Assembly (NCBI GenBank): GCA_950097015.1
Contig: CATNEN010000024.1
Coordinates: 4,960,001 to 5,024,000, forward strand
Direction: 5' to 3'
DNA length: 64,000 bases
Source of the DNA: Macrostomum hystrix
Taxonomy: Eukaryota > Animalia > Platyhelminthes
Shown: positions 16,901 to 59,960 of the stretch, piece after piece
How positions within the stretch are numbered: position 1 is the first letter of the stretch
How the letters are laid out: each line of letters starts with the position of its first letter
Program-made: the position numbers and the translations under genes
Notes under the pieces: model-generated
Told to the model about the DNA's origin: nothing
Database searches by the model: none
Seen by the model: only the letters and a program-made list of their open reading frames with translations

Positions 16901-19900
16901 CGCGAGATGGACATCATCGTCTCCGAGGTGACCATTGTGCGTGATTTTCGCGAGAAAGAGATTCGAATCTTCACAGACGCCGGCAGAATCTGTCGCCCGC
17001 TATTAATCGTTGAAAATCAGAAGCTTCTATTAAAGAAGCGTCACATTGATGAATTGCGCGAAGCTGAAGGCGGCGACGGTACTAGACGGTACGGCTGGCA
17101 GGATCTAGTCACTAGCGGTGTTGTTGAGTACATCGACACCCTGGAGGAGGAGACGGTCATGATTGCCATGACGCCAGACGATATTTCCAAATCCGGAGTG
17201 TACTGCTCCACTTACACGCATTGCGAAATTCATCCCAGCATGATTCTGGGCGTCTGCGCCTCCATCATACCGTTCCCGGATCACAACCAGAGCCCCAGGA
17301 ACACCTACCAATCTGCTATGGGCAAGCAGGCCATGGGTGTGTACATATCCAACTATCACATGCGCATGGACACCCTGGCCAATGTGCTCTACTATCCACA
17401 AAAGCCGTTAGTAACTACTCGAGCAATGGAGTACCTGCGCTTCCGCGAATTGCCAGCCGGTATTAACAGCATTGTGGCCATCGCCTCCTACACTGGCTAC
17501 AATCAGGAGGATTCCGTTGTTCTCAACGAGTCCGCCATTCATCGTGGCTTCTTCCGGTAATAAATCATTTTAATCTATTTCAGGTTCTTCCCCGCTGTAC
17601 TTTTCATAAAATTCCTCGACATGTACTTTTAAACGAGTCCTTCATGTGTAATTTTCAGCAAATCACTTATTTTAATCGAATCCCTCGCCGTTTACTGTAA
17701 TTTTTACTGAATCCTCACAAAATTTTTAACGTTAATAATTTTACCTGTATAGATATTTTTAACAAGCCTTTTTGTAAATATACATGTCTTAAAGTACGGG
17801 AAAAGAGATTAAAATGATTTCAATTTTGTTTCGTAAAAAAAACAGCTAGACATACGTGTGTAAGTTTTCCCTAAAGTGAGATTTGCCCACTCTGCTCAAA
17901 CCGCAGCTCTGAGTTCTACCGAACCTACCGCGACCAAGAGTCCAAACGGGGCCTCGACCAGGAGGAAGTGATCGAGAAGCCGCAGCGCACCGAAGTGCAG
18001 GGCATGCGGAACGCCATCTACGACAAGCTGGACGATGACGGGCTCATCGCACCCGGCGTGCGTGTCTCCGGCGACGACGTGCTGATTGGAAAGACCATCA
18101 CATTACCGGAGAATGAGGACGAGGTGAGATCCTCGAGTGGGATCTATTAGATTTGATTTCGCGTGTGTGATTGGGGAAAATGCAGATCCATCATCATGTG
18201 TGATTGGGGAAGAATCTATAGGCATAATAATGTGTGATTGGGGAAGAGTGTAGAGCCATCATCATGTGTGATTGGGGAAGAATCTATAGGCATAATAATG
18301 TGTGATTGGGGAAGAATCTATAGGCATAATAATGTGTGATTGGGGAAGAGTGTAGAGCCATCATCATGTGTGATTGGGGGAAGAATCTATAGGCATAATA
18401 ATGTGTGATTGGGGAAGAGTGTAGATCCATCATCATGTGTGATTGGGGAAGAATCTATAGGCATAATAATGTGTGATTGGGGAAGAATGTAGAGCCATCA
18501 TCATGTGTGATTGGGGAAGAATCTATAGCCATCATAATGTGTGATTGGGGAAGAATCTATAGCCATCATCATGTGTGATTGGGGAAGAATCTATAGCCAT
18601 CATAATGTGTGATTGGGGAAGAGTGTAGAGCCAGTTCCGTAAGCCTAATTCTCCCCCTGAATCCGCCACTGCAGCTGGAGGGCACCCAGCGCCGCTATAC
18701 CAAGCGAGACGCCTCGGTGTTCATGCGCCGGTCCGAGTACGGCATTGTTGACCAGGTCATGCTCACGGTGAATAACGAGGGCTACAAATTCTGCAAGGTG
18801 CGCATTCGCACCACCAAGATACCGCAGATTGGTGACAAATTCGCCAGCCGGCACGGCCAGAAGGGCACCTGCGGTATTCGCCTACAACAGCAGGACATGC
18901 CGTTCACCTGCGAAGGCATCACGCCGGATATCATCATCAATCCGCACGCTATTCCGTCTCGTATGACTGTTGGCCACCTGATTGAATGCCTACAGGGCAA
19001 GGTGTCAGCTAATAAAGGCGAGATTGGCGACGCTACACCGTTTAACGACACGGTGAATGTGCGCCGAATCTCGAAGCTGCTGTACGACTACGGCTACCAG
19101 CGTACCGGCAATGAGATTCTTTACAACGGCTTTACCGGCCGTAAACTCAACGCCCAGGTGTTTATCGGGCCTACTTATTATCAGCGACTGAAGCACATGG
19201 TCGACGACAAGATTCACTCGCGCGCCAGGGGCCCTGTGCAGATTCTGAACCGGCAGCCCATGGAGGGTCGGTCCAGGTCAGTTTTTGCTATTCTCTGTCT
19301 TCGATTATTTCATTTCTCATCGATTTTTTCTTATTTAATTCTTCCACGTACATGCACTTTACATTTAATTCGCCGCGTACTTTTCATCGAGTCTTTCATT
19401 GATTCGCCGTGTACTTTTCATCGAATCCTTCTATCATTCGCCGTGTACTTTTCATCGAATCTTTCTTTCATTCGCCGTGTACTTTTCATCGAATCCTTCT
19501 TTCATTCGCCGTGTACTTTTCATCGAATCCTTCTTTCATTCGCCGTGTACTTTTCATCGAATCCTTCTATCATTCGCCGTGTACTTTTCATCGAATCCTT
19601 CTATCATTCGCCGTGTACTTTTCATCGAATCCTTCTATCATTCGCCGTGTACTTTTCATCGAATCCTTCTATCATTCGCCGTGTACTTTTCATCGAGTCC
19701 TTCTTTCATTCGCCGTTTACTTTGCATCGAATCCTTCTATCATTCGCCGTGTACTTTTCATCGAATCCTTCTATCATTCGCCGTGTACTTTTCATCGAGT
19801 CCTTCTTTCATTCGCCGTGTACTTTTCATCGAATCCTTCATTGATTCGCATTGTACTTTTCATCGAATCCTTCTATCATTCGCCGTGTACTTTTCATCGA

Positions 19901-29904: not shown

Positions 29905-30228
29905 ATAATAATAATAACAATAATTGATTACACCTGCCCCAATTGGGTCAGATGTGCAGCCGACAGCACAGCCGCAGCTAATGCGCGGCGCATCTGAAGG
30001 CTGCGTACAGCTGTTCAGTCCATGGACTGGGGGGACGCCACACCCACCTTCAATTATCCCAGCTGCTGCTGGTACCCATTTAACAGCTGGGTGAACTGAA
30101 GCAATGCAGAGTTAAGTGTCTTGCTAAAGGACACAAATTGTTCAGTGGAGTCGGGAATCGAACCCCCGACCTTCAAGTCGTGAGTCCGACGCCCTAACCA
30201 CTAGGCTACAACCTCTGCTTAGAGGTTG
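29905..30228 (-). mobile_element. tRNA-derived SINE with conserved central domain, (TTA)n tail and 11-bp target-site duplication
   Basis: Minus strand: A box TAGCCTAGTGGTTAGG, B box GGTTCGATTCC, central TGTGTCCTTTAGCAAGACACTTAAC...CACCCAGCTGTTAAATGGGTACC (CORE/Meta/V-type SINE domain by recollection), TTA tail. ATAATGATATA lies at both 29894..29904 and 30229..30239. Confidence 0.82.
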
Positions 30229-39909: not shown

Positions 39910-42900
39910 CTACAGTTCAAACAGAGCCGCCTTGGGCACCTGGCCGCACAGAGCGTCCCGAATCTGGTCCAGACAGAGCATCTGCATTCCCAGCCGGGTC
40001 TGGCGCGTGTGCGTCCCGAAATGCGGCGTCACCCAGACGTTCAGCCGGCCATTGGCCAGCAGCGGATGCTCAGCCGGCAGCGGCTCCGGCTCCGTGACGT
40101 CCAGCCCGGCGCCTGCGATGATGCCAGCCTCCAGAGCAGCCAGCAGGGCCTCAGTGTCGACGATGCCGCCGCGGGCCACGTTGATAAGCGCCGCCGTCGG
40201 CCGCATGAGTTGCAGGGTGTCGGCGTTGATCAGGTGCCAAGTTTCCGGCCCCAGCGGGCAGGCGGTGACAACGAAGTCACACCGCGGCAACAGGTCAGCC
40301 AGGCTGACGCAATACTCCGCGCCACCCAACTGCACCTCCAGCTGGGGCTCCGCCCGATGACGCTGATGATAGAATAAGCGACAGCCGAAGCCCAGGCCGC
40401 ATCGTCTGGCGATGCAGCGGCCGATGGCACCGAGGCCGACAATGCCGACGCTCGCGCCGGCCAGGTCGCTGCCCAGAGGCACAACGGAGCCGCTCCAATT
40501 GGCTGGGCCAACGGCATGGATCTGCTCGAACACCTGGCGCTGCCGTCTAGCCACATTCAGCATGAGCAGCAGGGCAACGTCGGCGGTGGCCTCGGCGATG
40601 ACTACCGGCGTGTGCGTCACTAGGATGCCACGCGATCTGCAGAATATTCACCATTATTTGCCAACATTTCTACTCAGAGTAGCAAAAACTTACACTTAAA
40701 CTTCGTCTTACACTGCCGTTTCTCTCTCTTACACCTGCCTTTTCTCTCTCTCTCTTACACTTCACCGTTTCTCTCTCTCTTTCTCCTCGCCGTTTCTCTC
40801 TTCTCTCTCTCACCTCGCCGTTTCTCTCTCTCTTTCACCTCGCCGTCTCTCTCTCTCTCTCTCTCTTAGACCTCGCTATCTCTCTCTCTTAGACCTCGCC
40901 GTCTCCCTCTCTCTCTCTCTTAGACCTCGCCGTCTCTCTCTCTCCTTCACCTCACCGTTTCTCTCTCTCTCTCTTAGACCTCGCAGTCTCTCTCTCTCTC
41001 CCTCTCTTAGACCTCGCCGTTTCGGCCGCGTCGGCGGCTTCATCGGCGGCGTCGTCGGCGGCTTCGTCGGCGGCTTCAACGGTGGCTTCAACGACAGCTT
41101 CTACGGCGACTTCAACGGCGTCCTCTCTATTGCCAGGCTCTGGAAGGCCAGTTTGTCCAACATCAGGAGGGCTTTCCCGGCCGCGACCATTTGGGTGGTA
41201 CAGGTGGTCTGCCCCCGGATTCGCCTGCTGTCCTGAAGAGTAACTGCGACAAGACAAACCAGCTACTGAGCAGCCACCGGTCCAACAACTTGATATCGCT
41301 GGACACCTCGGAGCTAATATTTCGAAGGGACCGGATCACTCTGGAGCGAAAATCGGCTGATGAGGCATTCGCTGCCACCCTGAAGGCAGTGAACGAACCG
41401 GCAAAAAACTGAGCGGCTCACTCACCGAACACTTACACCGGACGAACAGAAACTACTGGAACGGGGCCAGTCCTTTGTAGTGGCTCCCCGCTACACCTCG
41501 GCGGCAGCAATGTCGTCAGGCATAAGCGACTTCAGCAAGCGTCTGGCCGTTTCGGCAGTTTGAGGCTACAAGCGTGAATTACCAAGGAAAGAAGGACCAA
41601 CCCCGCCGAACCGTCCACTAGCCAGCATCAACCCACTCCATCTCAGGCCCGACACACAAGCCATGCTACTGGAGCTGGAAGAAATCAAGAACGGCATCCA
41701 CGACTGCAAGAACATTCCAAACATCAGCGAAGCCGAGGCAAGAGCACTGCGGGACCTTCGCGCCGACAAGTTCATCGTCATCAAGCCGGCCGACAAGGGC
41801 AGTCAGCTGGTTATAATCGACCGACAGAACTATGTGCGCGAATGCCGGCGGCAACTGGAGGACCCACTCTTCTATCAAGACCCAAGCGGTTGATGAAGCG
41901 CCGATCAACCGCTTCACGGCCCAATGGATTCGAGCAGTCTTCCAGTCACTCCTAGACCGCAGGATAATCGACAGGCGCCAATTCAACGCCTTCAACCCGA
42001 AGGAGGAGTTCCGGACCCGGTGTTTCTACGTCCTGCCAAAAATTCACAAACCGGTCGAGACGTGCCCACTAGACAGTATCCCTCCAGGTCGGCCCATCAT
42101 ATCGGACGTGGACAGCGTGTCCTACGCCATCGGCCGCTTCATCGATAGCTATCTACAACCAATAGTGATCAAGTTTACTCAATCAATAGTGATTGAGTAA
42201 GATAGCCTGACGCTAGCTTACTCACTTTGCTCAAGCTGAACCTGGAGCGTAACGATGTGGGTTCGAAGGCAAATTTTTCCTTCAGTGAAATGCACTGCGA
42301 TGGGCAAGTCATTTGCACCCAGCTATAGCAATATTTACATGGGCTACTGGGAGCGTAGAGGCTTGGAGTCCAGTCCCATCAAACCCGCTCTGTGGCTACG
42401 ATACATCGACGACATTTTCGGCGTCTGGCGGGGAACAAAGGACGAACTCATCCGCTTCCACCAACATCTGAACGAACTGGATCCAAACATCAAACTTCAG
42501 CTGAGTTATAGCGACACCAAAGTGAATTTTCTGGGCATAAAAGTCTTCTGGGACCGCGACAAAGACAAGAAGAGGCTAGGCACGAAGGTGTACTTCAAGC
42601 CCACTGATAGCCGAGCCCTCATCCACCGCGAATCATTCCATCCTAAGCGAACATTCAAAGCCCGACGCTGTTCCCGGATGGCCGACTTCGATCAGTGTTA
42701 CAGCAGACGATTCTTGCGCGACACTAAATATGAAGTGCTGACGGAACTGAGATTCTACCCAACCAAGCAATGGGAATTCGACTTTCTGCCCTGAAACGCG
42801 AGTCGACTCTGCAAGGCTTGCCGAGCACACGCGAGGTTCACCTCGGTCTGTCCAGGATCCGCGGCCACGACAGTTAAGTTAGTCATCCGCCAAAGAGTCA

Positions 42901-45900
42901 ATTGCAACTTCGTCAACGCCGTCTACACCGTGTTCTGCCGCCGATGCGACCACACGGTGTATGTCGGGGAGACAGCGAACAGCATCCGAGCACGCATACT
43001 GGCGCATATGGGCGACATCAGGAACTCGCGCGACACACCAGTGGCCCGACACTTCACCAACGAGGGCCACAACCTGGCAGACTGCCTTCACCGGTGTGGA
43101 CACGCCGTCCACACGATGACTCGGGACCACGAACTGGTGAGCGACGTCAACGCCACGAGGCTAAACTCATCGAAGCCCTGAGGACTGGCGTCCCACACGG
43201 CGTCAATGAGTCAATGAGTGTACTGCACAACCCGGCCATCCCCCTGATACTGCCACACTGTACAAGGTCCGACAGCCTGGTCGCTACAGTCAGGGACAGC
43301 GTAGCTCGCCACTGCACCGCCCCGATTCTACCGGCTTTTACTAAGGGACGAAGCCTACGCGAGTTACTCTGCCACAGCCGTCTAGAACCGGCACAATGAT
43401 CTTTGATTGCGTATTTTGCTCCACTGCACTCTCCGGTCATTCAATGCTCTATTTTATTCGACTTTTAGGGTCAGAGTGGCCCTTGGTTTTTACACACTCT
43501 GCAACCAGTCATCCTAGGCGCTTTTACTTAAGAGTCTACGACTCACTCTACATTGCAAACATGTACGAGTACATACCATATTCACGCACACAGCTCATTT
43601 CGCTATCGTTCTCTTACACCTATACATCACCGTTTTCACTGCACCTATGAAAATCGCTCATTTTGCCCTGACGAAGATTATAATATAATCGAAAATTCAG
43701 CACTTTTTAATCTTGACGGACTTTCCTCCTTTTTTGCCGTGTCAGTGTCTGCGAGGTTCGAGGCGCTCCTCCTCTCTCCCTCTCTCTCTTATACCTCGCC
43801 GTTTCTCTCTCTCTCTGTGTTAGACCTCGCCGTTCCTCTCTCCCTTTTTTACCCGCCTGGCTTTTTGGTCCGGATTTCATCCGGATTTGGTCCGGAATAA
43901 TCCGTTTTAAGGGGTTTTTCCGGATGAACCAGAATTTCGTCCGGTTTCGCTCCGGTTTTAAGTATCCGGCAAATAAGCGGACCACTTTACGGACCAAAAC
44001 CGGATAAAGTTGCCTAATGTTAGTGATTTTAGTCCGGTTTTCATCCGAATTTTTTCCGGTTGCTTGTCTGTCCAAAAAACGTACAAGAACCGGGCTCAGA
44101 TCCGGATTAACTCCGGATGAAGATCGAATTTTGCCCGGAAAGTGGTCCGCTTTCTCTTCCGGTGATTCGTACGCACTCAACCGGATAAAAGCAGGAGCGG
44201 GAACCGGACGAAGAGCGGCAGTAATCCCTGTTAAGCAATGCTGTACAGCAGAATGATTTAATCACAAACTGATGTCCGTGGTGAACAGCCAAATATAACT
44301 ATGGCTAAAGGACTACATTTTAGATGCGTCTAATTCCTGTCCCGTAAAACCATCCGCCTCATCAGTGTCACAAAATGTAATCACTGTAATGGCTGTCATA
44401 AATTTAATCACAAATAAATTTAAACGCTGTGAAAAATTTCATCACTATAGTCTCTGTAATCACAGTGACTAGCAAAAATTCGTATTATTCGCTTCCTTTC
44501 TCAGTCACCTAGATATACGCTTAATCTCCAAATTGTGGCTATAAAGACATGGGTATGAACAGATAAAAAGGTTTCAGGGTACCAACCTAAGGGTACAGCT
44601 TAGAGCATTACAAATTTTTACAAGTCTAGTATTCCGTCTTAGAAATCTATGTATAATAACATGTTTCAGCGTATACCAAGAAATCAGCTGCCGGAGTAAA
44701 AGAAATAAAAAGGCAATGGAAGACTCGTAAAAGAAATAAAAAGGCAATGGAAGACTCGTCCCTACATCGTCGCCTCTACATGCGCAGGTACATGAACCGC
44801 AAGCGCGTTCAGGCTCGCCTTAACAGATGCTCACGCTCTCCTCTAGGTGACGGGCGTAGGAGGACACCCGACGAGGGCGACTCTGATGCCAGCCCCGCTG
44901 ACGCTGACAGGCACAGCGATACCTCCGACGAGGGCGACTCTGATGCCAGCCCCGCTGACGCTGACAGGCACAGCGATACCTCCGACGAGGGCGACTCTGA
45001 TGCCAGCCCCGCTGACGCTGACAGGCACAGCGATACCTCCGACGAGGGCGACTCTGATGCCAGCCCCGCTGACGCTGACAGGCACAGCGATACCTCCGAC
45101 GAGGGCGACTCTGATGTCAACCCCGCTGACACTGACGATGACGCCGACGCTAACAAGCGCAGCGAGACCTCCGAGGAGGGCGACTCCGAATCCGATGACG
45201 GTGAAACTGGTAAGTGTGGTATACCAACGTAACAACAGGCCATTATTAGCACTCTGTGACAGAATACGATGAGGCACAAAATCGCTACCAACATTTCTTC
45301 TCTTTGAAGGCGACGACGCTGCTCACGAAGATGAACATGCACTCGATGTCAAGTTGCTGCGTCCCTGGCATCCCGCACTGCCACGAACCGTTGGAGAGGC
45401 GCTTAGCGAGATCCTGTCATGCGCCACCGACCTGAAAGTATCCCGTGGTGGCGTGACCAGAATTTTGCGTCTGCTGCACCGTTTGGTTCCCGGAAACGCG
45501 TTGCCCAAAGGTGGTCGAGCAGCCCGCGAAGCCATTTCATCGGCGCAGTCAGTTATGCACAGTTCGAGGTGCTCGACAGTGTGCAACGACTGTCACTCGA
45601 ATTTTCCTGGCCAACAATGCGACTCCGAACGGGATCAGTGCCCCCAATGTGGATCGGTAAACATCGGCAACTTCTGGGACTTCGACGTCCAGAGACAGCT
45701 ACGGACACTGGTATTGCACCGCCAGTTGTTGGAGCATGCCACCTTTCCTATTGACCAGCAAGTCAGTACCGAAACAATCCACATGGTGAACAGCGAACTG
45801 TATAAGGTCTTTGTTGAGGGCATAGACCCGGGAAGTCGCAGCGATCTCTCTGGAATGATCTGTGGAGACGGCTTTCCCTTGCGTACGACCAGCTGCACTG

Positions 45901-48900
45901 AGGTCTACCCTGTCTACCTTAGCATAAACGAAATAGCAGATCCATTTAAACTGCGGTTTGTGATGAAGGTAGCCGCCTATGTCTCAAAGAAGAAGCTACA
46001 TCCTGCGGCGTTTATGCCGATCGTGGTGGATAAGTTAAATGCTCTTCGTATTGATGGCATCCAGTTCATCGACAGCCACAACGTTCGACGGCGTCTACGT
46101 GTACACACACTAATTGCTATGTTTGACGCACCCGCGCGTGCCGACGCTCTGAGTCTGAGACGTTTCTCCGCAACGTATGGCTGCGACAAATGCTATATTC
46201 GAACAGCTCTGCACCCATCCCGCTCTGGTCGCGTCTACGACGTTGACATCACGCCTGCTATGCAGAATGATGCGCGTCGCCTAGGCTGTGAACAGACGGT
46301 AGTACGCTCGGCGCATGACACCCAGCATTTGGCTGAGTATCATGCTCAGCAAGGACGCACGTTTCTAACCGATACATTGGGCGTGCGCGGATGTTCGCCA
46401 CTTACTCGCTTGTACGGTTTCGACATCATACGGGGAACCCCGCCATGTTTTCTTCATCAACTCTGCTCTGGTCTTGTGCGCTACATGCTATTTCAACTAT
46501 TCCTTGTGCGCGCTGAAAAACCAGACAAGGGTCCGACTAATTGTCCCGATTTGCATGCTCGCATAAGGGTCATTAAGACGAGAATGGATCTCATTCGAGT
46601 GCCCCGCTGTGTTCAGCGCCATAATGTCCGAGGACTGACTGACGTCCGGCACCTTCGGGGTCACGAACTGGCTATCTACATTCTGGCCTACGCACCTTTA
46701 GTTCTCGAGGAGTTTCTCCCCGACGAACACTATTGGCACCTGCTGATCCTGTCCTCTGCCGTCTTCTGGATGTGCCTTGATAGCGCGCCGAAGTCCGAGC
46801 TGCGTCACGTGGAGACGTCTCTCAGGCATTTCCATGCCAACTTGCCGCGGTTGTACTCTCTAAGAGCCCTGACTTACAATGCGCATCAAGTTTGTTGCCA
46901 TATGCTGCCCTCCGTGTTGCTCGCCGGGCCACTGCACAGGCTGTCGGCTGGTCTCTTTGAGTCAATGCACGTTCGACTGAGAGACCAACTGCATGGGACC
47001 CGCCGGACAGACATCGAATTGGTCGGCGCAATTGAACGCGAGTTTGCTGCCATTCAGGCGCAGGCCTCTACTTTTGGCGACAATGCAGAACTCGGTGGCC
47101 AGATGCGTGCGATGCTCACAGAGTCAATCGTCTGCGGCAATGTTGTTCTGAAGCGACCTAAACATATGGTCGATGGCTGGCAGACAGCCACACTGCAGTC
47201 CGGCTTCGAGGTCGAAGTCTTCAATCCAGAATTGGATGCGGACAACGAGAAGTGCAGACGATCGTGCAGCAGCTTTGTAGCCATTAAACGACAGTTTGAC
47301 CAGACATCGTTCGCATTTGCACGTGTGGCTGCTATCAATGTCGACGGTGAGGACGTGGAGATGACGGTCGACATAGTCCCCGTAGAAGACGACTATTTCG
47401 ATCCACTAGAGTCCCTGTGTCGTGTGCGTGCGACGACAGAAGAGCGCGGTTGTCGCTTCGCTCACGTGCGCCGGCTTCTGGGCAATCCGTTCGGCCCTGC
47501 GACAACCTGGAACGCATCCCGTGTGCCTGTGCGTGATATTGTCGGATCGTGTGTATTGACGGCTGGTAAAATCGCGCTGCTACCCTATTCGCAGCTCAAT
47601 TACCACTGACTCTGTTTCCTTTCTTCTCATAGCACGCTCCCTGCTCATACACACTTCCCTAGCACCGCTCTCAGTAGACATTGAAGCCCAATGCGTCAAG
47701 AGTCTCCCGATTCACATTTCCTGTTATATCGCTGTCTGGATACAGTTTTCTGTTGCTTTAAACTAACTTTTTTACACTGCAGCACGAATTAAGAGGATGC
47801 TTAATTATGCCCAATTATTAGTCACGTTTTCCCATGTAGCGGTAATGTTATTTTTTATAATCATCATGTTGGCTGTCTGTAATTACTTCATTTGCTGGAT
47901 GTCGTGTGTACGTAGTACTAAAACAAAATAAACTGCGCTCCTCGATTTGAAACTATTACAACTTCGATTCATGGCCATGGACGGTTCTTCCCGTGTCGCA
48001 TAATCCATTCCATACGTTGCCACCAGAATCCACACCCTAATCAAACTCAAATTCCCAGAAAATGTTGAGCTCACGTCTCACATCAATACTCTGACGTGTG
48101 TAGAAAATATACTTCGGCTCTATATAGAAGACCTTCTATTTTCAGTCCACGCCAGCCACAAAGGACCACTGGACGCACGCCGCTAGTTGCCCAGTCTGTA
48201 CCGCGTTATCTGAAGACAACAAGATGCTGCGGGCCGAGCTGCACCGGCTTCGCGAAGGCAGCCAGAGTCGACCGACGTCGCCTGTTTTTCACTCCAGTTT
48301 GGCTTTGCGATACCACCGAGCACTTTGCGCTTCAGACGAGCTACCATCAACGCAGGTGATGTCAGGCGCATGGCCGAATCTGCAGCATCAGGCCGAAAGC
48401 GTGACGCCCCGGCGTCCATTGGCGGCATCCACTGGCCAATGGTCCGGACCCCTGCATTTAGACGACGGCTCAGACAACGTTCCGTCTGATGCTGCCATTG
48501 GAGCCCCTGCTGATGCCGCCGGAGCTGCTGCAGTCACCGGAGCCCCTGCTGATGTCGCCGGATCGGCTGCCGCCGGAGCTGCTGCTGGAGACCTTGTGTT
48601 CGTCGGCCGACCAGGTGGCCTTTTCTTTGGAAAGTCAGCGGCAGAAATGAAAGCTGACTACAACCGGCTTCCAGAGAAGAAGGCCGCCGGTCCAGCGAGC
48701 GTGTACGTCTGCCGCCGACAAGCCGACCGAATGGAACTGGAGGCCCATTGCTGCCCGGAGTGTGAAGGCTGGTATGCAGGTATGTCACCCGACAGCCGTA
48801 GAAAGCGTCTGCAGCTGGCGGGCAGACATAGAAGCAACCAGCCGAAGCTGAATCACGACGCCCAGTTCTGGGCAATAGACATGCCCCCCACCCCACCGGA

Positions 48901-51900
48901 GGCACCCATCGAGGCCATGCGGCCACTGCGCCGACGCAGACGGCCGCTGCGAGATTTGCAGCATCGCAGCCCGAAAACCTGAATCTGTCTTCCATATATG
49001 GATTGATATATCAATATGTTCGAAAATATCACTTTAAAAATATCACGAAGTTTCGACGAAGTGATCACTTAAATGAATTTATTTGTTGGTTGACAATCGG
49101 CGTTTTTAGTTGCAGACTAAGGCGAACATCTACGAGACTAAATATATTTCACCTCCGAACCAGTTTAACGGCTTGATCTCGGGATTAAGGCTTTCGGTCT
49201 TTCAGACTTACCTCCATTTAAAACCTTCATCCTTTCACAAGGATACTCATTTCTCGGAGACGCCACTTTGAGCAAAACAATATGATAATTCATTTCCCCT
49301 CCTTCAGATCTATCAGCGCTGAAAAATGGTGCGCGACAGAAAAGTATTGAAAGAAATGAAAGAAGCAGAACAGAGCAAACACCGAAAACGTCGTTCTGAG
49401 ATCTCAGAAGCGAAGCGCAAACCTGAGAAGCGCAAACCTGAGAAGCGCAAACCAGGCACTTCGGAGCTGACGGGAGCGGTGCCAACAGACGATGCCGCAC
49501 GGTCATCGGTCGTGTCTGAACCCCCTCCCCCGCCACCTCCTCCAACGAAGAAGCGCGTAATGCTAATTTCTGATCGAGCTCATCTTGCGAATGCGGGTGA
49601 CAGACCAGGGACTTCAGGCAATGGAACTGCCCGTGACGATGAGATCGGGGACGAAGAGAATTTAAACCCCTCGTTTGACGTGGCACCCTGCATGGTAGAC
49701 ATGGAACCGTACAAGGCGGAGAACCGAGCTCGCTATTTTCTTTTCCAGTATGAGAATTACCACGAACGTACGGAGGTCGTGGGTACCGACGGGGCCACTT
49801 CAACGCCACTCATCGTGGCTCGTAAGCGCGATTCCCCCGTCCCAGTTGAACTCGGCAGCGTCGTACTCATCGTCACCGCTAAAACAAACCGCAAATCGGC
49901 TCGGCGTTACCGGGGCACACTCGTGCGAGGACCTTTCGAAGACAAAGCTGCAGCTACGGGAGCAGCCAAATTAACAAACGTCCACTCGCAGCCCGTTGAG
50001 CTGCCACGCTCCTGCCAGTCCTGTAGGGGACTGCAGCTCGAGCTGCAAAGGGCCGCGTCGCTTTCAGAAACTCTGGGTAAGACTTTGGGGACTAACGGGG
50101 AGAAACAGGGAAGAAGGCTGCAGATCGAGATGCAGCTAGGTTATGCAGGTACAGGCTGTGCGAATTCAAAGTGCTTAACTTACGTTCTTCAGACAAAGTA
50201 CGTCATATGATTTCATTTAGGCACTCAACTCCGGAAGACACGCGCCGAGGCCGCTCACCTGAAGGAGGCTTGTCGAGATCTGGAGCAAAAAATCACGGTT
50301 TCGTCGAAAATGGAGGCCAAACTGCTGCGACAAGTTGAGGCTGCGGAGGCCAAATGCGTTGCACTGCAGCGAACGGCAGCTAACGCCAACTCGCATTTGG
50401 TCAGCGCCTCGCAGATTCTCGCAGCCGGCTGCAAAAACAATGCTTCAGTGTCCAGGTCACAGCAGGACGCGGACGAAGACGACAGCGCGAACACCGGCGA
50501 CGAATCGAATTTAGAATCCGAATTTATGGCCCACGGTACCCTGTCCGCTTCGCAGACGCGAGCTTTGGTGGCTGCCTGCCACAAGGCCAGCTCGCATACC
50601 GATGCAGGACATTCATCCAACACAGACGCCTGTCTCGTCAGCCTGTCGGATTCACAAAACTTTGTCAAGGTGTCATCCTCGTCGCGAATTCAGCTAGACC
50701 AGCGGCTCGAGGACTTCCGCGAAGCCTCGAAGCCATCCGTCGATATCGATGCACCGCAAAGTGATAATGGCCATTTCGCCAAATTGGCCGTACTAAGAGC
50801 CCTGTTCAGGGCCCTCTTTACGGAGCAGGAGTTGGCCCACTCAACCATCTCCGGGCGCAAGACGCCCGGCTATGTGTCTACGCCCGCGAATCCTGGTAAG
50901 CTGGCAGCCGCTAAAGAGTGGCTGCGCAGCAGCAATGTGGCTTTCAACGACCGCCAGCTGCGTCGGGCATTTACGCGCTGCGGTGAAACTGCCCGGCAGC
51001 GCCTGGGTCTACCGAAGCACGTGCGATCAAAGAATTGCGACAAGGCAGCCCCGCGTCCGAAGCAGTCGTCGACGCAGAAGCCTTCCAGATCCGCCAGAGC
51101 CAGTAACGTCGCCGGATCGGCTGCCGCCGGAGCTGCTGCAGCCGCCGGAGCCACTGCTGATGTCGCCGGATCGGCTGCTGCCGGAGCTGCTGCAGCCGCC
51201 GGAGCCACTGCTGCAGCCGCTGGAGCCACTGCTGATGTCGCCGGATCGGCTGCTGCCGGAGCTGCTGCAGCCGCCGGAGCCACTGCTGCAGCCGCTGGAG
51301 CCACTGCTGATGTCGCCGGATCGGCTGCCGCCGAAGCTGCTGCAGTCGCCGGAGGCAGTCAAGTGCTAGGCAGTCTTCTTGGGGATGTGCAGGACGACTT
51401 CATGGCGAACTTGCTGCAGAAGGACGCAGCCTAGTCTGTTCGTCCCGAAGGACACGAAGGCGACAAACTGCTTCAATTTCGCCAAATTCACTTTAATTAT
51501 AAACAGTATAGGCAGCAAATTTATTTTTACTAGCTCTTTAGGCCCTGAGATATAGTGTTCGTGCACAGCTGGTGCACTGTGTAAAGTCCCTGACTGGACT
51601 CTCCCTGACTGTGTTCGTGCAGAGTTTCGATCGTGTTCCATTGTGTTCGTGCAGAGTTTCGATCGTGCAGAATAAATGTTTTGTGCGCAGAGAGTGCTAC
51701 TTTGCACTTTGCACTTTGCACTTAGCTAATGACGAAACAGGGATGTTCTCATCGATTATATCTTCAATGTTTTTATGCATCGTGAGTAGGCTGAAAGCAC
51801 CAGAAAATTTAGAATACGAGGCAACTATTCTCCATACAACGGATACATTTCATATGCATATAAATATGCGTCGTATGAACCTGCTTAGAATAGTATGAAA

Positions 51901-52825
51901 TTTCTGGCACCTTTCGTCCGGTAACGTACCCGGAAACTGGTCCGGTTTCACTGTCAGGTATATTCGTCCGGATTTTATCCGGAAACTAGTCCGGAAACTG
52001 ATCCGGTTTTACTGTCAGGTATATTCGTCCGGATTTTATCCGGAAACTAGTCCGGAAACTGATCCGGTTTTACTGTCAGGTATGGTCGTCCGGTTTTCGT
52101 CCGGAATTTGCTCAGATTATCGTCCGGCCAAAGCCGGACTGCACTCTGGATGAATTTCCGGACCAACACCGGACAGTCAACCGGACGAAAGGCCAAAATT
52201 TTCACGCGTTGGTCCGTTTTGTTAACTATACTCCGGTTTTCGTCCGGTTTTTTAAATGGGAAAAATGCATTACGTACCGGATGAAGCACCGGAACAACCA
52301 CCGGGCTATTTTCTTGTTTTCCGGACTAAAAAGGCCAGGCGGGTAGACCTCGCCGTTTCTCTCTCCCTTTCTTAGACCTCGCCGTTCCTCTCTCCCTTTC
52401 TTAGACCTCGCCGTTCCTCTCTCCCTTTCTTAGACCTCGCCGTTCCTCTCTCCCTTTCTTAGACCTCGCCGTTTCTCTCTCTCTCTCTCTCTGTCTCTCA
52501 GACCTCGCCGCTTCTCTCTCACAGTAAGAAGAACAGTCAAGCCAGCCCACCTGAACAGCTCCTGCCTGACGTGCTCCACGCCCACTCCGTGATTGGCCAC
52601 AATTCGCAGATTAGGCAGCCTGTCCAGTACAGCCGGTGAGTCGATGAAGTTGGCCACCACGGCTATGACGGCGGCCACGATCTCCGGCCACTGCCGATCC
52701 GGATCCGAGTCGAACTCTTCCGTGGTCACAATGCGATAATGCTTCTCCGCCTCAGTAAAAAACTCCGGCAATAGGAAGCCCCACTTCTTGGGTACCAGCA
52801 GGCCCGACAGCTCCTGTGACGTCAT
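39910..52825 (-). CDS. D-isomer 2-hydroxyacid dehydrogenase (glyoxylate/2-ketogluconate reductase-like), two exons split by an 11.9-kb intron
   Basis: complement(join(39910..40636,52551..52825)), 333 aa from ATG 52825. The phase-2 junction restores GVGVEHVRQELFR|SRGILVTHTP; motifs GIVGLGAIG, INVARG, GLDV, EPL and TPHFG are present. Confidence 0.9.
40720..41023. repeat. CT-rich repeat with (AGACCTCGCCGT) core; recurs at about 43767..43851 and 52344..52520
   Basis: The same motif appears in three pieces separated by the two large insertions. Confidence 0.85.
41024..43766 (+). mobile_element. Degraded Penelope-like retroelement (RT + GIY-YIG endonuclease)
   Basis: Fragmented frames: IVIKPADKGSQLVI, FYVLPKIHK...PGRPIIS, TAMGKSFAPSYSNIYM, WLRYIDDIF, VNFLG, TKVYFKPT, and GIY-YIG-like CRRCDHTVYVGETANSIRARILAH. 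Frameshifts and an internal RT deletion; boundaries approximate. Confidence 0.9.
43661..43705 (+). ncRNA. Candidate minimal type I hammerhead ribozyme at the 3' end of the Penelope-like element
   Basis: CTGACGA (43668..43674), stem II GATTAT/ATAATC, GAAA (43691..43694), palindromic AATT stem III, UUC cleavage triplet; stem I is short with a mismatch. Confidence 0.55.
44747..47609 (+). CDS. CACTA/EnSpm-type DDE transposase (two exons)
   Basis: join(44747..45209,45310..47609), 100-nt intron G|gtaagt...ttgaag|GC, about 920 aa. CMC-type motifs: CGDG (D1), VYPVYLSINE, FDAPARA (D2), GCDKC (C(2)C), FLH, HQVCCH, LFESMH (E). N-terminal acidic 19-aa repeats and two CxxC pairs. Confidence 0.9.
48146..48982 (+). 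CDS. Transposon-encoded miniature CtIP/Sae2/Ctp1-like protein
   Basis: ORF 48224..48982 is open upstream to an acceptor at 48146 (ctattttcag|TCC), adding CPVCTALSEDNKMLRAELHRLRE (CxxC + coiled coil). 48707..48895 encodes VCRRQADRMELEAHCCPECEGWYAGM...GRHR...NHDAQFWAIDMPPTP, which aligns without gaps to the recalled CtIP C-terminal domain (CxxC, RHR, FW). True start codon unresolved. Confidence 0.8.
   Translation, partial: STPATKDHWTHAASCPVCTALSEDNKMLRAELHRLREGSQSRPTSPVFHSSLALRYHRALCASDELPSTQVMSGAWPNLQHQAESVTPRRPLAASTGQWSGPLHLDDGSDNVPSDAAIGAPADAAGAAAVTGAPADVAGSAAAGAAAGDLVFVGRPGGLFFGKSAAEMKADYNRLPEKKAAGPASVYVCRRQADRMELEAHCCPECEGWYAGMSPDSRRKRLQLAGRHRSNQPKLNHDAQFWAIDMPPTPPEAPIEAMRPLRRRRRPLRDLQHRSPKT
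49326..51434 (+). CDS. Transposon accessory protein: basic N-terminus, CxxC + coiled coil, C-terminal BEN-like domain (two exons)
   Basis: join(49326..50076,50221..51434), G|gtaaga...ttcatttag|GC, 654 aa. LRALFRALFTEQELAHSTISG...NPGKLAAAKEWL...RRAFTRCGETARQR fits the BEN pattern. Confidence 0.7.
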
Positions 52826-53425: not shown

Positions 53426-54459
53426 CAGATCACTCCTGTTGCAATATTTGCAAGCTAGTTTCGCTTTCATCCTTCATTATCCACTCCGCTCTTGTAGTCA
53501 ATACGAAATAAAGCAATGAGCTTTGAACAGTGCCACAATGGCTATAGTTTTTGTGGCGCACAATGCGCACTATTTTTGTCGTATATAATTTTCAATATAA
53601 GGTAGGCAGATATATAAAAAAGGACAGATTCGCACAGGTCAACAAAGACAACTAACAGGCAACGCGTAATAAACAAACGCGCCAACCAAACAAATGATAT
53701 GCAAGAGGAAACGCGGAACAAAAAACACTGGCAATCTAAAGGGCACATCTCTAATAAAAATCGAACGAAAAAAATAAGATAAAAAACTGACGTATGATTA
53801 TCGATTGACACAGCTTCCAATACCGCACTAATTAATATCATTGAAAACGAACAAGCGTTTCTTATCTATGATCAAAGCTGGCTTGACCAACAACTCCGCA
53901 GCAAGCAGTTAAGATATTGGCAGCTTTTCGTAGTGTAGAACAGTCATTAAATAAGCACAAACGCTACCATTAAGCCAAATAATCAGGACAATATGGAAAA
54001 AACAAAGACTGCAAGAATAGAAAGCTAAAAAAATAACAAACTCGATATAAACCAGTGGATCTTATAATGTAAAATCTGAAATATTTTACAATTGAATGCG
54101 AAAACTAGCTATTTTAATATTTTTTGTATTTCTACAGAGACATATAGATTGTACTTTTAATGGCTAATCAAGATTTCAGATTGCTAAGAACGAGACTAAA
54201 CAAATTATAATAGTTTTTATAAAAATACAAAATTTAAAAGAATGTTGGACTTTTTAATAGTATGAGCGGCAAGCAAATGCAAACAGATAAACTTGTAGCA
54301 AATAGCACCAAAAGCGCTTCGTGTTTTTTTTTAATAAAAAAGCTTTGATTCTTGTCATGAAATAAAACTGGTTTTACTGTGTAGTTTGCTTCAATATGTG
54401 CGTGTAATTTATAGAGATTAGTCAATTGGTGTACAGGGGGTACAGTACAGTAATTCTGT

Positions 54460-57400
54460 AGGGGGTTGGTCTAAGTGCATACATTTGGGAAGGGGTTGGT
54501 CTAAGTGCATACATTTGGGAAGGGGTTGGTCTAAGTGCATACATTTGGGAAGGGGTTGGTCTAAGTGCATACATTTGGGAAGGGGTTGGTCTAAGTGCAT
54601 ACATTTGGGAAGGGGTTGGTCTAAGTACGCACATTCTGGAAGGGGTTGGTCTAAGTGCATACATTCTGGAAGTGGTTGGTCTAAGTGCGCACATTCTGGA
54701 AGTGGTTGGTCTAAGTGCGCACATTCTGGAAGGGGTTGGTCTAAGTGCGCACATTCTGGAGGTGGTTGGTCTAAGTGCGCACATTCTGGAAGCGGTTGAT
54801 CTAAGTGCGCACATTCTGGAAGTGGTTGATATAAGTGCGCACATTCTGTAGGTGGTTGGTCTAAGTGCGCACATTCTGTAGGTGGTTGGTCTAAGTGCAT
54901 ACATTTGGGAAGGGGTTGGTCTAAGTGCGCACATTCTGTAGGTGGTTGGTCTAAGTGCGCACATTCTGTAGGTGGTTGGTCTAAGTGCGCACATTCTGTA
55001 GGTGGTTGGTCTAAGTGCGCACATTCTGGAAGTGGTTGGTCTAAGTGCGCACATTCTGGAAGTGGTTGGTCTAAGTGCGCACATTCTGGAAGTGGTTGGT
55101 CTAAGTGCGCATTCTGGAAGGGGTTGGTCTAAGTGCGCACATTCTGTAGGTGGTTGGTCTAAGTGCGCACATTCTGGAAGTGGTTGATATAAGTGCGCAC
55201 ATTCTTTAGGTGGTTGGTCTAAGTGCGCACATTCTGTAGGTGGTTGGTCTAAGTGCATACATTTGGGAAGGGGTTGGTCTAAGTGCGCACATTCTGTAGG
55301 TGGTTGGTCTAAGTGCGCACATTCTGTAGGTGGTTGGTCTAAGTGCGCACATTCTGTAGGTGGTTGGTCTAAGTGCGCACATTCTGGAAGTGGTTGGTCT
55401 AAGTGCGCACATTCTGGAAGTGGTTGGTCTAAGTGCGCACATTCTGGAAGTGGTTGGTCTAAGTGCGCATTCTGGAAGGGGTTGGTCTAAGTGCGCACAT
55501 TCTGTAGGTGGTTGGTCTAAGTGCGCACATTCTGGAAGTGGTTGGTCTAAGTGCGCACATTCTGGAAGTGGTTGATCTAAGTGCGCACATTCTGGAAGTG
55601 GTTGATCTAAGTGCGCACATTCTGGAAGTGGTTGATCTAAGTGCGCACATTCTGGAAGTGGTTGGTCTAAGTGCGCACATTCTGGAAGGGGTTGGTCTAA
55701 GTGCGCACATTCTGGAGGTGGTTGGTCTAAGTGCGCACATTCTGGAAGCGGTTGATCTAAGTGCGCACATTCTGGAAGTGGTTGATATAAGTGCGCACAT
55801 TCTGTAGGTGGTTGGTCTAAGTGCGCACATTCTGTAGGTGGTTGGTCTAAGTGCATACATTTGGGAAGGGGTTGGTCTAAGTGCGCACATTCTGTAGGTG
55901 GTTGGTCTAAGTGCGCACATTCTGTAGGTGGTTGGTCTAAGTGCGCACATTCTGTAGGTGGTTGGTCTAAGTGCGCACATTCTGTAGGTGGTTGGTCTAA
56001 GTGCGCATTCTGGAAGGGGTTGGTCTAAGTGCGCACATTCTGGAGGGGGTTGGTCTAAGTGCGCGCATTCTGTAGGTGGTTGGTCTAAGTGCGCACATTC
56101 TGGAAGTGGTTGGTCTAAGTGCGCACATTCTGGAAGTGGTTGATCTAAGTGCGCACATTCTGGAAGTGGTTGATCTAAGTGCGCACATTCTGGAAGTGGT
56201 TGATCTAAGTGCGCACATTCTGGAAGGGGTTGGTCTAAGTGCGCACATTCTGGAGGTGGTTGGTCTAAGTGCGCACATTCTGGAAGCGGTTGATCTAAGT
56301 GCGCACATTCTGGAAGTGGTTGATATAAGTGCGCACATTCTGTAGGTGGTTGGTCTAAGTGCGCACATTCTGTAGGTGGTTGGTCTAAGTGCATACATTT
56401 GGGAAGGGGTTGGTCTAAGTGCGCACATTCTGTAGGTGGTTGGTCTAAGTGCGCACATTCTGTAGGTGGTTGGTCTAAGTGCGCACATTCTGTAGGTGGT
56501 TGGTCTAAGTGCGCACATTCTGGAAGTGGTTGGTCTAAGTGCGCACATTCTGGAAGTGGTTGGTCTAAGTGCGCACATTCTGGAAGTGGTTGGTCTAAGT
56601 GCGCATTCTGGAAGGGGTTGGTCTAAGTGCGCACATTCTGTAGGTGGTTGGTCTAAGTGCGCACATTCTGGAAGTGGTTGATATAAGTGCGCACATTCTT
56701 TAGGTGGTTGGTCTAAGTGCGCACATTCTGTAGGTGGTTGGCCTAAGTGCATACATTTGGGAAGGGGTTGGTCTAAGTGCGCACATTCTGTAGGTGGTTG
56801 GTCTAAGTGCGCACATTCTGTAGGTGGTTGGTCTAAGTGCGCACATTCTGTAGGTGGTTGGTCTAAGTGCGCACATTCTGGAAGTGGTTGGTCTAAGTGC
56901 GCACATTCTGGAAGTGGTTGGTCTAAGTGCGCACATTCTGGAAGTGGTTGGTCTAAGTGCGCATTCTGGAAGGGGTTGGTCTAAGTGCGCACATTCTGTA
57001 GGTGGTTGGTCTAAGTGCGCACATTCTGGAAGTGGTTGGTCTAAGTGCGCACATTCTGGAAGTGGTTGATCTAAGTGCGCACATTCTGGAAGTGGTTGAT
57101 CTAAGTGCGCACATTCTGGAAGTGGTTGATCTAAGTGCGCACATTCTGGAAGGGGTTGGTCTAAGTGCGCACATTCTGGAGGTGGTTGGTCTAAGTGCGC
57201 ACATTCTGGAAGCGGTTGATCTAAGTGCGCACATTCTGGAAGTGGTTGATATAAGTGCGCACATTCTTTAGGTGGTTGGTCTAAGTGCGCACATTCTGTA
57301 GGTGGTTGGTCTAAGTGCATACATTTGGGAAGGGGTTGGTCTAAGTGCGCACATTCTGTAGGTGGTTGGTCTAAGTGCGCACATTCTGTAGGTGGTTGGT

Positions 57401-59960
57401 CTAAGTGCGCATTCTGGAAGGGGTTGGTCTAAGTGCGCACATTCTGGAGGGGGTTGGTCTAAGTGCGCACATTCTGTAGGTGGTTGGTCTAAGTGCATAC
57501 ATTTGGGAAGGGGTTGGTCTAAGTGCGCACATTCTGTAGGTGGTTGGTCTAAGTGCGCACATTCTGTAGGTGGTTGGTCTAAGTGCGCACATTCTGTAGG
57601 TGGTTGGTCTAAGTGCATACATTTGGGAAGGGGTTGGTCTAAGTGCGCACATTCTGTAGGTGGTTGGTCTAAGTGCGCACATTCTGTAGGTGGTTGGTCT
57701 AAGTGCGCACATTCTGTAGGTGGTTGGTCTAAGTGCGCACATTCTGGAAGTGGTTGGTCTAAGTGCGCATTCTGGAAGGGGTTGGTCTAAGTGCGCACAT
57801 TCTGTAGGTGGTTGGTCTAAGTGCGCATTCTGGAAGGGGTTGGTCTAAGTGCGCACATTCTGTAGGTGGTTGGTCTAAGTGCGCACATTCTGGAAGTGGT
57901 TGGTCTAAGTGCGCACATTCTGGAAGTGGTTGATCTAAGTGCGCACATTCTGGAAGTGGTTGATCTAAGTGCGCACATTCTGGAAGTGGTTGGTCTAAGT
58001 GCGCACATTCTGGAAGGGGTTGGTCTAAGTGCGCACATTCTGGAGGTGGTTGGTCTAAGTGCGCACATTCTGGAAGCGGTTGATCTAAGTGCGCACATTC
58101 TGGAAGTGGTTGATATAAGTGCGCACATTCTGTAGGTGGTTGGTCTAAGTGCGCACATTCTGTAGGTGGTTGGTCTAAGTGCATACATTTGGGAAGGGGT
58201 TGGTCTAAGTGCGCACATTCTGTAGGTGGTTGGTCTAAGTGCGCACATTCTGTAGGTGGTTGGTCTAAGTGCGCACATTCTGTAGGTGGTTGGTCTAAGT
58301 GCATACATTTGGGAAGGGGTTGGTCTAAGTGCGCACATTCTGTAGGTGGTTGGTCTAAGTGCGCACATTCTGTAGGTGGTTGGTCTAAGTGCATACATTT
58401 GGGAAGGGGTTGGTCTAAGTGCGCACATTCTGTAGGTGGTTGGTCTAAGTGCGCACATTCTGGAAGGGGTTGGTCTAAGTGCGCACATTCTGTAGGTGGT
58501 TGGTCTAAGTGCGCACATTCTGGAAGTGGTTGGTCTAAGTGCGCATTCTGGAAGGGGTTGGTCTAAGTGCGCACATTCTGTAGGTGGTTGGTCTAAGTGC
58601 GCATTCTGGAAGGGGTTGGTCTAAGTGCGCACATTCTGTAGGTGGTTGGTCTAAGTGCGCACATTCTGGAAGTGGTTGGTCTAAGTGCGCACATTCTGGA
58701 AGTGGTTGATCTAAGTGCGCACATTCTGGAAGTGGTTGATCTAAGTGCGCACATTCTGGAAGTGGTTGGTCTAAGTGCGCACATTCTGGAAGGGGTTGGT
58801 CTAAGTGCGCACATTCTGGAGGTGGTTGGTCTAAGTGCGCACATTCTGGAAGCGGTTGATCTAAGTGCGCACATTCTGGAAGTGGTTGATATAAGTGCGC
58901 ACATTCTGTAGGTGGTTGGTCTAAGTGCGCACATTCTGTAGGTGGTTGGTCTAAGTGCATACATTTGGGAAGGGGTTGGTCTAAGTGCGCACATTCTGTA
59001 GGTGGTTGGTCTAAGTGCGCACATTCTGTAGGTGGTTGGTCTAAGTGCGCACATTCTGTAGGTGGTTGGTCTAAGTGCGCACATTCTGTAGGTGGTTGGT
59101 CTAAGTGCGCATTCTGGAAGGGGTTGGTCTAAGTGCGCACATTCTGGAGGGGGTTGGTCTAAGTGCGCGCATTCTGTAGGTGGTTGGTCTAAGTGCGCAC
59201 ATTCTGGAAGTGGTTGGTCTAAGTGCGCACATTCTGGAAGTGGTTGATCTAAGTGCGCACATTCTGGAAGTGGTTGATCTAAGTGCGCACATTCTGGAAG
59301 TGGTTGATCTAAGTGCGCACATTCTGGAAGGGGTTGGTCTAAGTGCGCACATTCTGGAGGTGGTTGGTCTAAGTGCGCACATTCTGGAAGCGGTTGATCT
59401 AAGTGCGCACATTCTGGAAGTGGTTGATATAAGTGCGCACATTCTTTAGGTGGTTGGTCTAAGTGCGCACATTCTGTAGGTGGTTGGTCTAAGTGCATAC
59501 ATTTGGGAAGGGGTTGGTCTAAGTGCGCACATTCTGTAGGTGGTTGGTCTAAGTGCGCACATTCTGTAGGTGGTTGGTCTAAGTGCGCATTCTGGAAGGG
59601 GTTGGTCTAAGTGCGCACATTCTGGAGGGGGTTGGTCTAAGTGCGCACATTCTGGATGTGGTTGGTCTAAGTGCATACATTTGGGAAGGGGTTGGTCTAA
59701 GTGCGCACATTCTGTAGGTGGTTGGTCTAAGTGCGCACATTCTGTAGGTGGTTGGTCTAAGTGCATACATTTGGGAAGGGGTTGGTCTAAGTGCGCACAT
59801 TCTGTAGGTGGTTGGTCTAAGTGCGCACATTCTGTAGGTGGTTGGTCTAAGTGCGCACATTCTGGAGGTGGTTGGTCTAAGTGCGCACATTCTGGAAGTG
59901 GTTGGTCTAAGTGCGCATTCTGGAAGGGGTTGGTCTAAGTGCGCACATTCTCTAGGGAGG
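54460..59960. repeat. 5.5-kb satellite, 30-nt unit (GGTTGGTCTAAGTGCGCACATTCTGTAGGT) with 28-nt variants
   Basis: About 180 copies; variant blocks recur in the same order. Confidence 0.98.

Follow-up and report, generated by a model that had tools for sequence, protein, structure and literature searches.

Cut-and-paste transposons depend on the double-strand-break repair of their host to survive excision and to gain copies, and this step is normally thought to be left to the host. A locus in the flatworm Macrostomum hystrix raises the question of whether a transposon can bring a part of this repair machinery with it. The window analyzed here is a stretch of 64,000 nucleotides (positions 4,960,001 to 5,024,000 of contig CATNEN010000024.1, assembly GCA_950097015.1). 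An earlier note, made from the letters of the window alone, had proposed that a CACTA-type DNA transposon in it carries its own miniature version of the end-resection factor CtIP/Sae2. In this study, we found a complete element of 8.5 kb at 43852-52343 with all of its genes on the + strand. One of these genes, called here the CtIP-tail gene, encodes a protein whose tail, judged by sequence comparison, is a genuine CtIP/Sae2 C-terminal domain. The positions of all features of the element are given in Table 1.

The identity of the tail was examined with the Pfam family SAE2 (PF08573), the profile that the earlier note had suggested as a check. The whole open reading frame (ORF) scored 20.5 bits and its last 110 residues scored 23.8 bits, against a cut-off of 19.8, and SAE2 was the sole meaningful family. 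A phmmer search with the last 110 residues against 1.8 billion representative proteins gave 50 matches at an expectation value (E) <= 1e-3. The matches that were checked came from molluscs, amphioxus, fishes, a nemertean and an acoel. They were annotated as RBBP8 or as Ctp1-domain proteins and carried Pfam SAE2 (one of them also CtIP_N), and the match was always at the C-terminus. The exception was P0004, a low-complexity Cys-rich repeat protein. As a control for chance, an independent profile was built from 17 metazoan CtIP tails, with the window row and two flatworm-type rows left out, and was searched against 1079 six-frame segments of the window. Only the segment 48128-48979 matched (70.7 bits, E 7.6e-21), and the next segment had an E of 0.48. 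Chance similarity of the tail to CtIP was ruled out by this control.

We then examined the residues in an alignment of 20 sequences. The element protein kept all invariant columns (7/7; V, R, C, C, R, H and R), as well as F73 and W74, the Thr of the final motif and most of the near-invariant columns. The Thr at the column equivalent to T859 was kept but is followed by Pro. A gapless alignment of 63 residues at 48707-48895 to CtIP, with about 23 identities and with the motifs H-x-CxEC, RHR and FW, had been put forward in the earlier note. All of these motifs were present in our alignment, and the same 63 residues showed 24 identities to RBBP8 of the fish Silurus and 22-24 to other metazoan CtIPs. 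Among solved structures, a profile search based on the tail alignment gave no match. Neither the tail alignment nor a transposase alignment led to a confirmed locus in scans of JGI metagenome contigs. A word-indexed search with the 278-residue form of the protein also gave no match, and the query was probably swamped by its Ala-rich linker. A tail of the CtIP type was also observed outside the window, in a 200-residue protein with an N-terminal C2H2 zinc finger (P0015/P0053, on a Logan contig of 981 nt).

The likeness to CtIP ends with the tail. The note had described a miniature CtIP in which an N-terminal CxxC motif and a coiled coil mimic the dimerisation end. The C-terminal part of this description was borne out, but what is present corresponds only to the tail in the last exon of CtIP, and the rest is new, partly element-derived sequence. 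The CPVC at 48188-48199 lies upstream of the first ATG (48224), inside a stretch of 92 bp (48113-48204) that is replaced in a co-existing variant. The CtIP_N profile showed no match to the protein even at E <= 10, and BLASTP against the host CtIP of the related species Macrostomum lignano detected no similarity outside the last ~102 residues. The sole predicted N-terminal helix has about 20 residues; it was seen in an AlphaFold2 model of the 278-residue form alone, which is unreliable at a mean predicted local distance difference test (pLDDT) value of 39.8. Since CPVC precedes the ATG and neither CtIP_N nor BLASTP similarity extends beyond the tail, we treat the gene as a CtIP tail on a new N-terminal half and not as a miniature full CtIP.

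Two upstream starts for the protein were considered. Under the first, the start at 48146 given in the earlier note might still be real. The TTTCAG at 48140-48145 fits the acceptor motif for trans-splicing of the spliced leader (SL) in M. lignano, and that SL ends in ATG (PMC8629364). An ATG supplied by an SL at 48146 would be in frame with the CtIP-tail ORF. However, with 3.8 occurrences per kb the motif is common in the element and is not enriched here, so that its presence is not evidence for an acceptor, and the only RNA contig at this place is unspliced. Splicing of transposase exon 1 to 48146, which would produce a transposase-CtIP fusion, joins a phase-1 donor to a phase-0 exon start; it would be out of frame and was rejected.

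The ORF lies between the inverted ends of one element, as the note had stated for its terminal inverted repeats. The two ends (the right one finishing in GTCCGGA) differ by one mismatch and one indel. The density of CCGGA/TCCGG in the 400 bp inside each end is 55-72 per kb, compared with <1 per kb outside the element. Both outer flanks belong to one 29-bp minisatellite, and nothing was lost from it across the insertion. The CACTA core is absent from the ends, which are of the CCC type. Ends that start with CCC, together with 2-bp duplications, have been reported as characteristic of animal CACTA-superfamily elements ever since SmTRC1 was described from Schistosoma (PMC1636069).

The transposase pointed to the same group. 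A phase-1 junction from 45209 to 45310, read from the sequence, restores its frame. Its identity to P0001, the transposase encoded by a related element on a marine metagenome contig (L001), is 44%, and the D/D/C2C/H4H/E residues are invariant between the two proteins. The series D, D, C(2)C, H(4)H, E is the defining feature of the CACTA/Mirage/Chapaev/Transib group (PMC12730594). The nearest Atlas clusters of the transposase carry Transposase_21 / DUF1258, with a score of 0.98. Pfam Transposase_21 (PF02992) gave no match at E <= 1 for the window transposase and none at E <= 10 for P0001. An AlphaFold2 model of the transposase from a two-row alignment had a pLDDT of 30.9, too low for use. These results indicate that the element is a DNA transposon of the CCC-ended animal branch of the CACTA/EnSpm-Mirage-Chapaev group. 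Thus, the superfamily named in the earlier note is upheld by the DDE motifs, the CCC ends and the 2-bp duplication, while the CACTA motif itself is missing. With a transposase and accessory genes between intact ends, the element is apparently autonomous-looking by sequence.

Two further genes, orf3 and orf4, follow the CtIP-tail gene, and the tail of orf4 contains a 75-bp tandem repeat at 51108-51354. Neither these genes nor their homologues in L001 matched any Pfam family, the BEN domain included. Exact look-ups of the CtIP-tail ORF, orf3 and orf4 in a protein collection and a contig index gave no match.

The surroundings of the element were also inspected. A TC-rich minisatellite with units of 25-29 bp forms three blocks (40706-41120, 43773-43851 and 52344-52520), and the element is inserted between the second and the third. 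The first and second blocks are 2.7 kb apart, and the DNA separating them contains a reverse-transcriptase-like ORF at 42255-42794 (RVT_1, E 0.017) and a weak transposase-like match at 41662-41934 (27% over 96 residues, E 0.002). Since the 8.5-kb element and these matches all lie between its blocks, the minisatellite array may collect insertions.

The origin of the tail was investigated by comparison with other CtIP tails. A pair from M. lignano (P0002/P0052) was closest, 53% identical across 102 residues (pairwise E 2e-32), followed by P0003, a 315-residue metagenome protein. In a tree of 54 tails, the window tail grouped with the M. lignano pair and then with P0003, with Shimodaira-Hasegawa approximate likelihood ratio test (SH-aLRT) values of 96 and 95, respectively. 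The host CtIP of M. lignano (PAA54340.1 / PAA88737.1, gene Mlig004387, ~480 residues) has introns and an N-terminal coiled coil and is flanked by acetyl-CoA synthetase (ACS) and EMP24 genes on two contigs. No similarity to the transposase, orf3 or orf4 was found within 10 kb of the CtIP loci on these two contigs. M. lignano CtIP is a host gene at a stable locus. In contrast, the element gene is intronless, and its N-terminal half is unrelated. It is distinct from the host gene, a point that the earlier note had listed among its checks. The similarity between the two is confined to the last ~102 residues and falls wholly in the single last exon of the host gene. Within this region, the element tail and M. 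lignano CtIP have in common several traits that are absent from other metazoan CtIPs, namely ADYN-LPE, RHR-x-NQ, MPPTP, a basic RRxRPL tail and the lack of a T847-type site.

The sequence that precedes the tail has another source. At the DNA level, the linker (48507-48585) matches the 75-bp tandem repeat of orf4 with 88-94% identity, and the two are alike in reading frame. Since the linker matches the element's own repeat, the gene is a chimera in which a captured last exon is joined to sequence of the element, and it was built inside the element. The related element L001 97-10043, from a Tara Oceans marine metagenome contig, gave a view of the plan without this gene. It is complete and 9.9 kb long, with 33-nt inverted ends that begin CCCGC, CCGG-rich subterminal fields, and a transposase, orf3 and orf4 in the same order as in the window element minus the CtIP gene. 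Its flanks show no clear 2-bp duplication (AT vs CC). No CtIP similarity was found anywhere in L001, and the 1-kb spacer at the corresponding site contains no ORF longer than 61 residues. As L001 is without the gene, the CtIP-tail gene was probably added to an older three-gene plan. An ancestor of the element would have captured the terminal exon of a CtIP gene of the Macrostomum lineage, and this exon would then have been fused to element sequence to give a new open reading frame.

These comparisons also bear on whether the window simply shows the CtIP locus of the host itself, either enclosed by two transposon ends that do not belong together or produced by an assembly error. The host CtIP of M. 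lignano is itself short (~480 residues), and a short CtIP-like gene would not be odd for this lineage. However, the order of transposase, an inserted gene, orf3 and orf4 is shared, minus the inserted gene, by L001. The two ends form matching inverted repeats, flanked by a TA duplication, inside one continuous minisatellite. In M. lignano, CtIP has a syntenic locus of its own. The linker consists of element sequence, and independent DNA runs assemble identical junctions. This explanation is close to refuted.

Other copies of the element were sought in sequencing reads, compared over 45250-51100. One DNA run (X2) covers this whole region and contains two forms at each of two places, all keeping ATG 48224 and the ORF. 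In one variant, 71 bp at 46977-47049, just after the catalytic E, are replaced by 4 bp, which shifts the transposase frame. In the other, the 92 bp at 48113-48204 are replaced by 3 nt. The word depth of the replaced forms was about 90, compared with about 125-136 for the window form at each place, and the form with the 46977-47049 replacement made up about 40% of the element word depth in X2. This frameshifted form suggests that a part of the family is probably non-autonomous while the CtIP-tail ORF is kept. A further fragment in X2 shares ~90% identity with the transposase tail and then continues into dissimilar sequence. DNA runs of a second sample with the same organism label and of a third label contained the CtIP ORF at >99% identity. 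The transposase variants, 6 synonymous and 5 non-synonymous, were too few to test. In wastewater metatranscriptomes, RNA contigs were found for parts of the transposase, for the 5' part of the CtIP-tail gene (48085-48583) and for orf3 and orf4, but not for the AT-rich spacers. Near-identical RNA contigs of the element were present in runs X7 and X9-X11; wastewater is an odd source for a Macrostomum-type worm.

Phosphorylated Sae2/CtIP stimulates MRX/MRN (Mre11-Rad50-Xrs2 or MRE11-RAD50-NBS1) to cleave hairpin or protein-blocked ends (PMC11662671). Excision of hAT elements leaves hairpins, and in a yeast Ac/Ds assay no revertants were obtained without Mre11 or Sae2 (PMC3299998). The catalytic cores of CACTA/Mirage/Chapaev transposases have motifs in common with those of Transib and RAG1 (PMC12730594). 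We propose that the small protein would use the conserved MRE11-RAD50-activating tail of CtIP at breaks made by the transposase. The ends of these breaks would be hairpin-capped or blocked by the transposase, as expected from the Transib and RAG1 relatives, and their processing would shift the outcome towards end clean-up and a homology-templated repair at the donor site. As the CtIP oligomerisation end is lacking, the protein would probably act together with host CtIP or an element protein and not stand-alone. A retained accessory role of the CtIP-tail gene, exerted through MRN and to the benefit of the element, is plausible from its sequence, and we place it slightly below an even chance. 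The more specific proposal is that it was selected to recruit or activate host MRN at transposase-made hairpin or protein-blocked ends, which would make the element the first eukaryotic cut-and-paste transposon known to supply a break-resection cofactor of its own and thereby to bias the repair of its donor site; this proposal is tentative, and we regard it as rather unlikely on the sequence comparisons made here.

Several observations weigh against a function of this kind, also in the simple form put forward in the earlier note, in which the excision break would be steered to resection and sister-templated repair. The oligomerisation domain that CtIP requires in vivo was not detected in the element protein, and the column of the key cyclin-dependent kinase (CDK) site (human T847, yeast S267) has His followed by Asp. 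In human cells, a C-terminal fragment of CtIP (790-897) and a Sae2-like CtIP minus 165-790 perform poorly (PMC7261161). Hairpin formation by CACTA-type transposases is extrapolated from their relatives. The RNA contigs have low depth and may include DNA carry-over. The copies in the reads are >99% alike, and intact frames therefore say little about selection within the family. The ORF variants are 2 synonymous and 3 non-synonymous, including one Leu to Pro change in the domain, and are too few to test. In favor of a function, synonymous sites between the element tail and host CtIP are saturated (third-position identity 35%) and the non-synonymous divergence (dN) is 0.47-0.53, which suggests that the split is old and that the sequence was constrained on at least a part of the path. 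This long-term constraint, however, is not assignable to the transposon branch alone.

The missing oligomerisation domain, the near-identity of the copies and the ORF variants also fit a passenger, in which the last exon of host CtIP was picked up and the chimeric ORF has been carried and transcribed without benefit, intact because the copies are young. In plants, CACTA and Mutator elements take up gene fragments, and such capture by CACTA-type elements is documented (Pack-CACTA, PMC6379663), the CtIP part amounts to one exon only, and L001, the only known related element, is without the gene. Long neutral drift, however, can hardly account for the survival of the invariant CtIP residues and of a frame of 252 codons through synonymous saturation relative to the nearest host gene. 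A frame as long as the ORF arose in 4/20000 composition shuffles, and the non-CtIP N-terminal half alone, at 84/20000, is also open beyond chance. The element is autonomous-looking, unlike Pack elements. The ORF stands apart as a GC-rich gene set off by AT-rich spacers of its own, a 62% GC island flanked by spacers of 37-41% GC like the other element genes. We consider a mere passenger rather unlikely.

A conserved tail without the N-terminal domain is also in line with a decoy. Such a protein would compete with host CtIP for MRN and dampen resection or checkpoint signaling at transposition breaks, and quick end joining would be favored so that the cell survives. The failure of C-terminal-only human CtIP to complement in cells (PMC7261161) and the changed CDK-site column point in this direction. 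However, in the alignment the host CtIP of M. lignano is also without a T847-type CDK site, so that the change is a trait of the lineage and not of a decoy. In addition, C-terminal fragments of CtIP/Sae2 have been described in vitro as the part that regulates MRN/MRX and not as inhibitors (PMC7261161). We consider a decoy improbable. An accessory that acts with MRN to the benefit of the element is the reading we prefer, with a small share of the probability left to explanations of another kind.

The element was compared with known systems. Like the animal CACTA elements of the SmTRC1/Mirage type (DeMarco et al. 2006, PMC1636069; CMC/CMCT clade, PMC12730594), it has CCC ends, a 2-bp duplication, more than one gene and fields of subterminal repeats. 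It differs in that no described member has a gene with a CtIP/Sae2 domain and in that the window transposase is below Pfam Transposase_21 significance. Yeast Sae2 (345 residues) and fission-yeast Ctp1 are likewise short proteins with a conserved C-terminal tail that regulates MRE11-RAD50, a role that may be predicted for the element protein; they keep an N-terminal oligomerisation domain and a CDK site (S267), neither of which is detectable in the element protein. Pack-CACTA and Pack-MULE elements (PMC6379663) also hold a host gene fragment between transposon ends, fused into a chimeric frame, but they are non-autonomous and their fragments are usually decaying, whereas the window element keeps a transposase, accessory genes and all invariant residues of the domain. 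The TET/JBP dioxygenase genes in fungal Kyakuja/Dileera/Zisupton, Plavaka and EnSpm-like elements (PMC12730594) offer a parallel: there, too, an autonomous transposon lineage has retained a cell-derived accessory gene with a plausible influence on the way the host deals with the element. In that case the cargo is a fungal DNA-modification enzyme, in contrast to the domain of an animal cofactor of double-strand-break resection. A literature search for CtIP/Sae2 cargo in CACTA/EnSpm elements or in transposons found no description, in agreement with the earlier note.

Table 1. Features of the CCC-ended element in the window (positions are those of the window)
Feature	Position	Strand	Basis or details
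Left target-site duplication, TA	43850..43851	.	29-bp minisatellite continues across the insertion, with TA doubled
Left terminal inverted repeat, begins CCCGCCTGG	43852..43874	+	Pairs with the right end over 23/24 nt
Left subterminal CCGGA/TCCGG repeat field	43852..44250	.	55 motifs per kb
Transposase exon 1, acidic, with 57-bp tandem repeat	44747..45209	+	ORF up to GTAAGT donor at 45210
Transposase exon 2, DDE core	45310..47609	+	D172, D258, C277-x2-C280, H511-x4-H516, E536 (numbering of the 751-residue ORF)
In-frame open leader	48128..48223	+	Stop at 48125-48127; TTTCAG 48140-48145; CPVC 48188-48199
CtIP-tail gene, 252 residues, intact, intronless	48224..48982	+	Open frame between transposase and orf3
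Linker segment matching orf4 tail repeat	48507..48585	+	DNA comparison, same reading frame
CtIP/Sae2 C-terminal domain (by sequence), ~102 residues	48653..48958	+	Pfam SAE2, phmmer, alignment, independent profile, identity to host CtIP
orf3	49326..50210	+	Homologue at equivalent position in L001, 32% identity, E 2e-14
orf4, with Ala-rich repeat tail	50310..51434	+	Homologue in L001, 30% identity, E 4e-11
Right subterminal CCGGA/TCCGG repeat field, with 61-bp tandem units	51901..52343	.	72 motifs per kb; tandem repeat 51930-52106
Right terminal inverted repeat	52320..52343	-	Pairs with the left end
Right target-site duplication, TA	52344..52345	.	Flank comparison

Other features were observed elsewhere in the window. 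A repeat of ~300 bp at 29924-30216 has four counterparts in two M. lignano loci (L002 and L003), to which it is 83-86% identical. These counterparts are 84% alike among themselves, and the repeat is probably a short non-autonomous element common to both genomes. Together with the tree of CtIP tails, it places the genome of the window with M. lignano or a close relative. The exons at 13648-17560 were read from their translations as the second-largest subunit of RNA polymerase II, and the introns between them are filled with 35-bp and 41-bp minisatellites (14707-15034 and 15778-16782). Minisatellite-filled introns were seen both in the window and in the M. lignano loci. At 54453-59951, a 30-bp unit occurs in 184 copies that match at 90%; together they form a 5.5-kb array with a strong GC skew (+0.35). 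On the - strand, an ORF of 236 residues at 39913-40620 belongs to the D-2-hydroxyacid dehydrogenase / glyoxylate reductase family; its best matches were only ~50% identical, many of them bacterial, and no close flatworm match was among them.

The element keeps a piece of the host's own resection trigger and would offer a natural experiment on how much of CtIP suffices to act on MRE11-RAD50. It would also bear on whether CACTA-type transposases leave hairpin or blocked ends and on how a transposon can tilt the choice of repair pathway. Since M. lignano is a transgenic model amenable to RNA interference, these questions are directly testable in that species.

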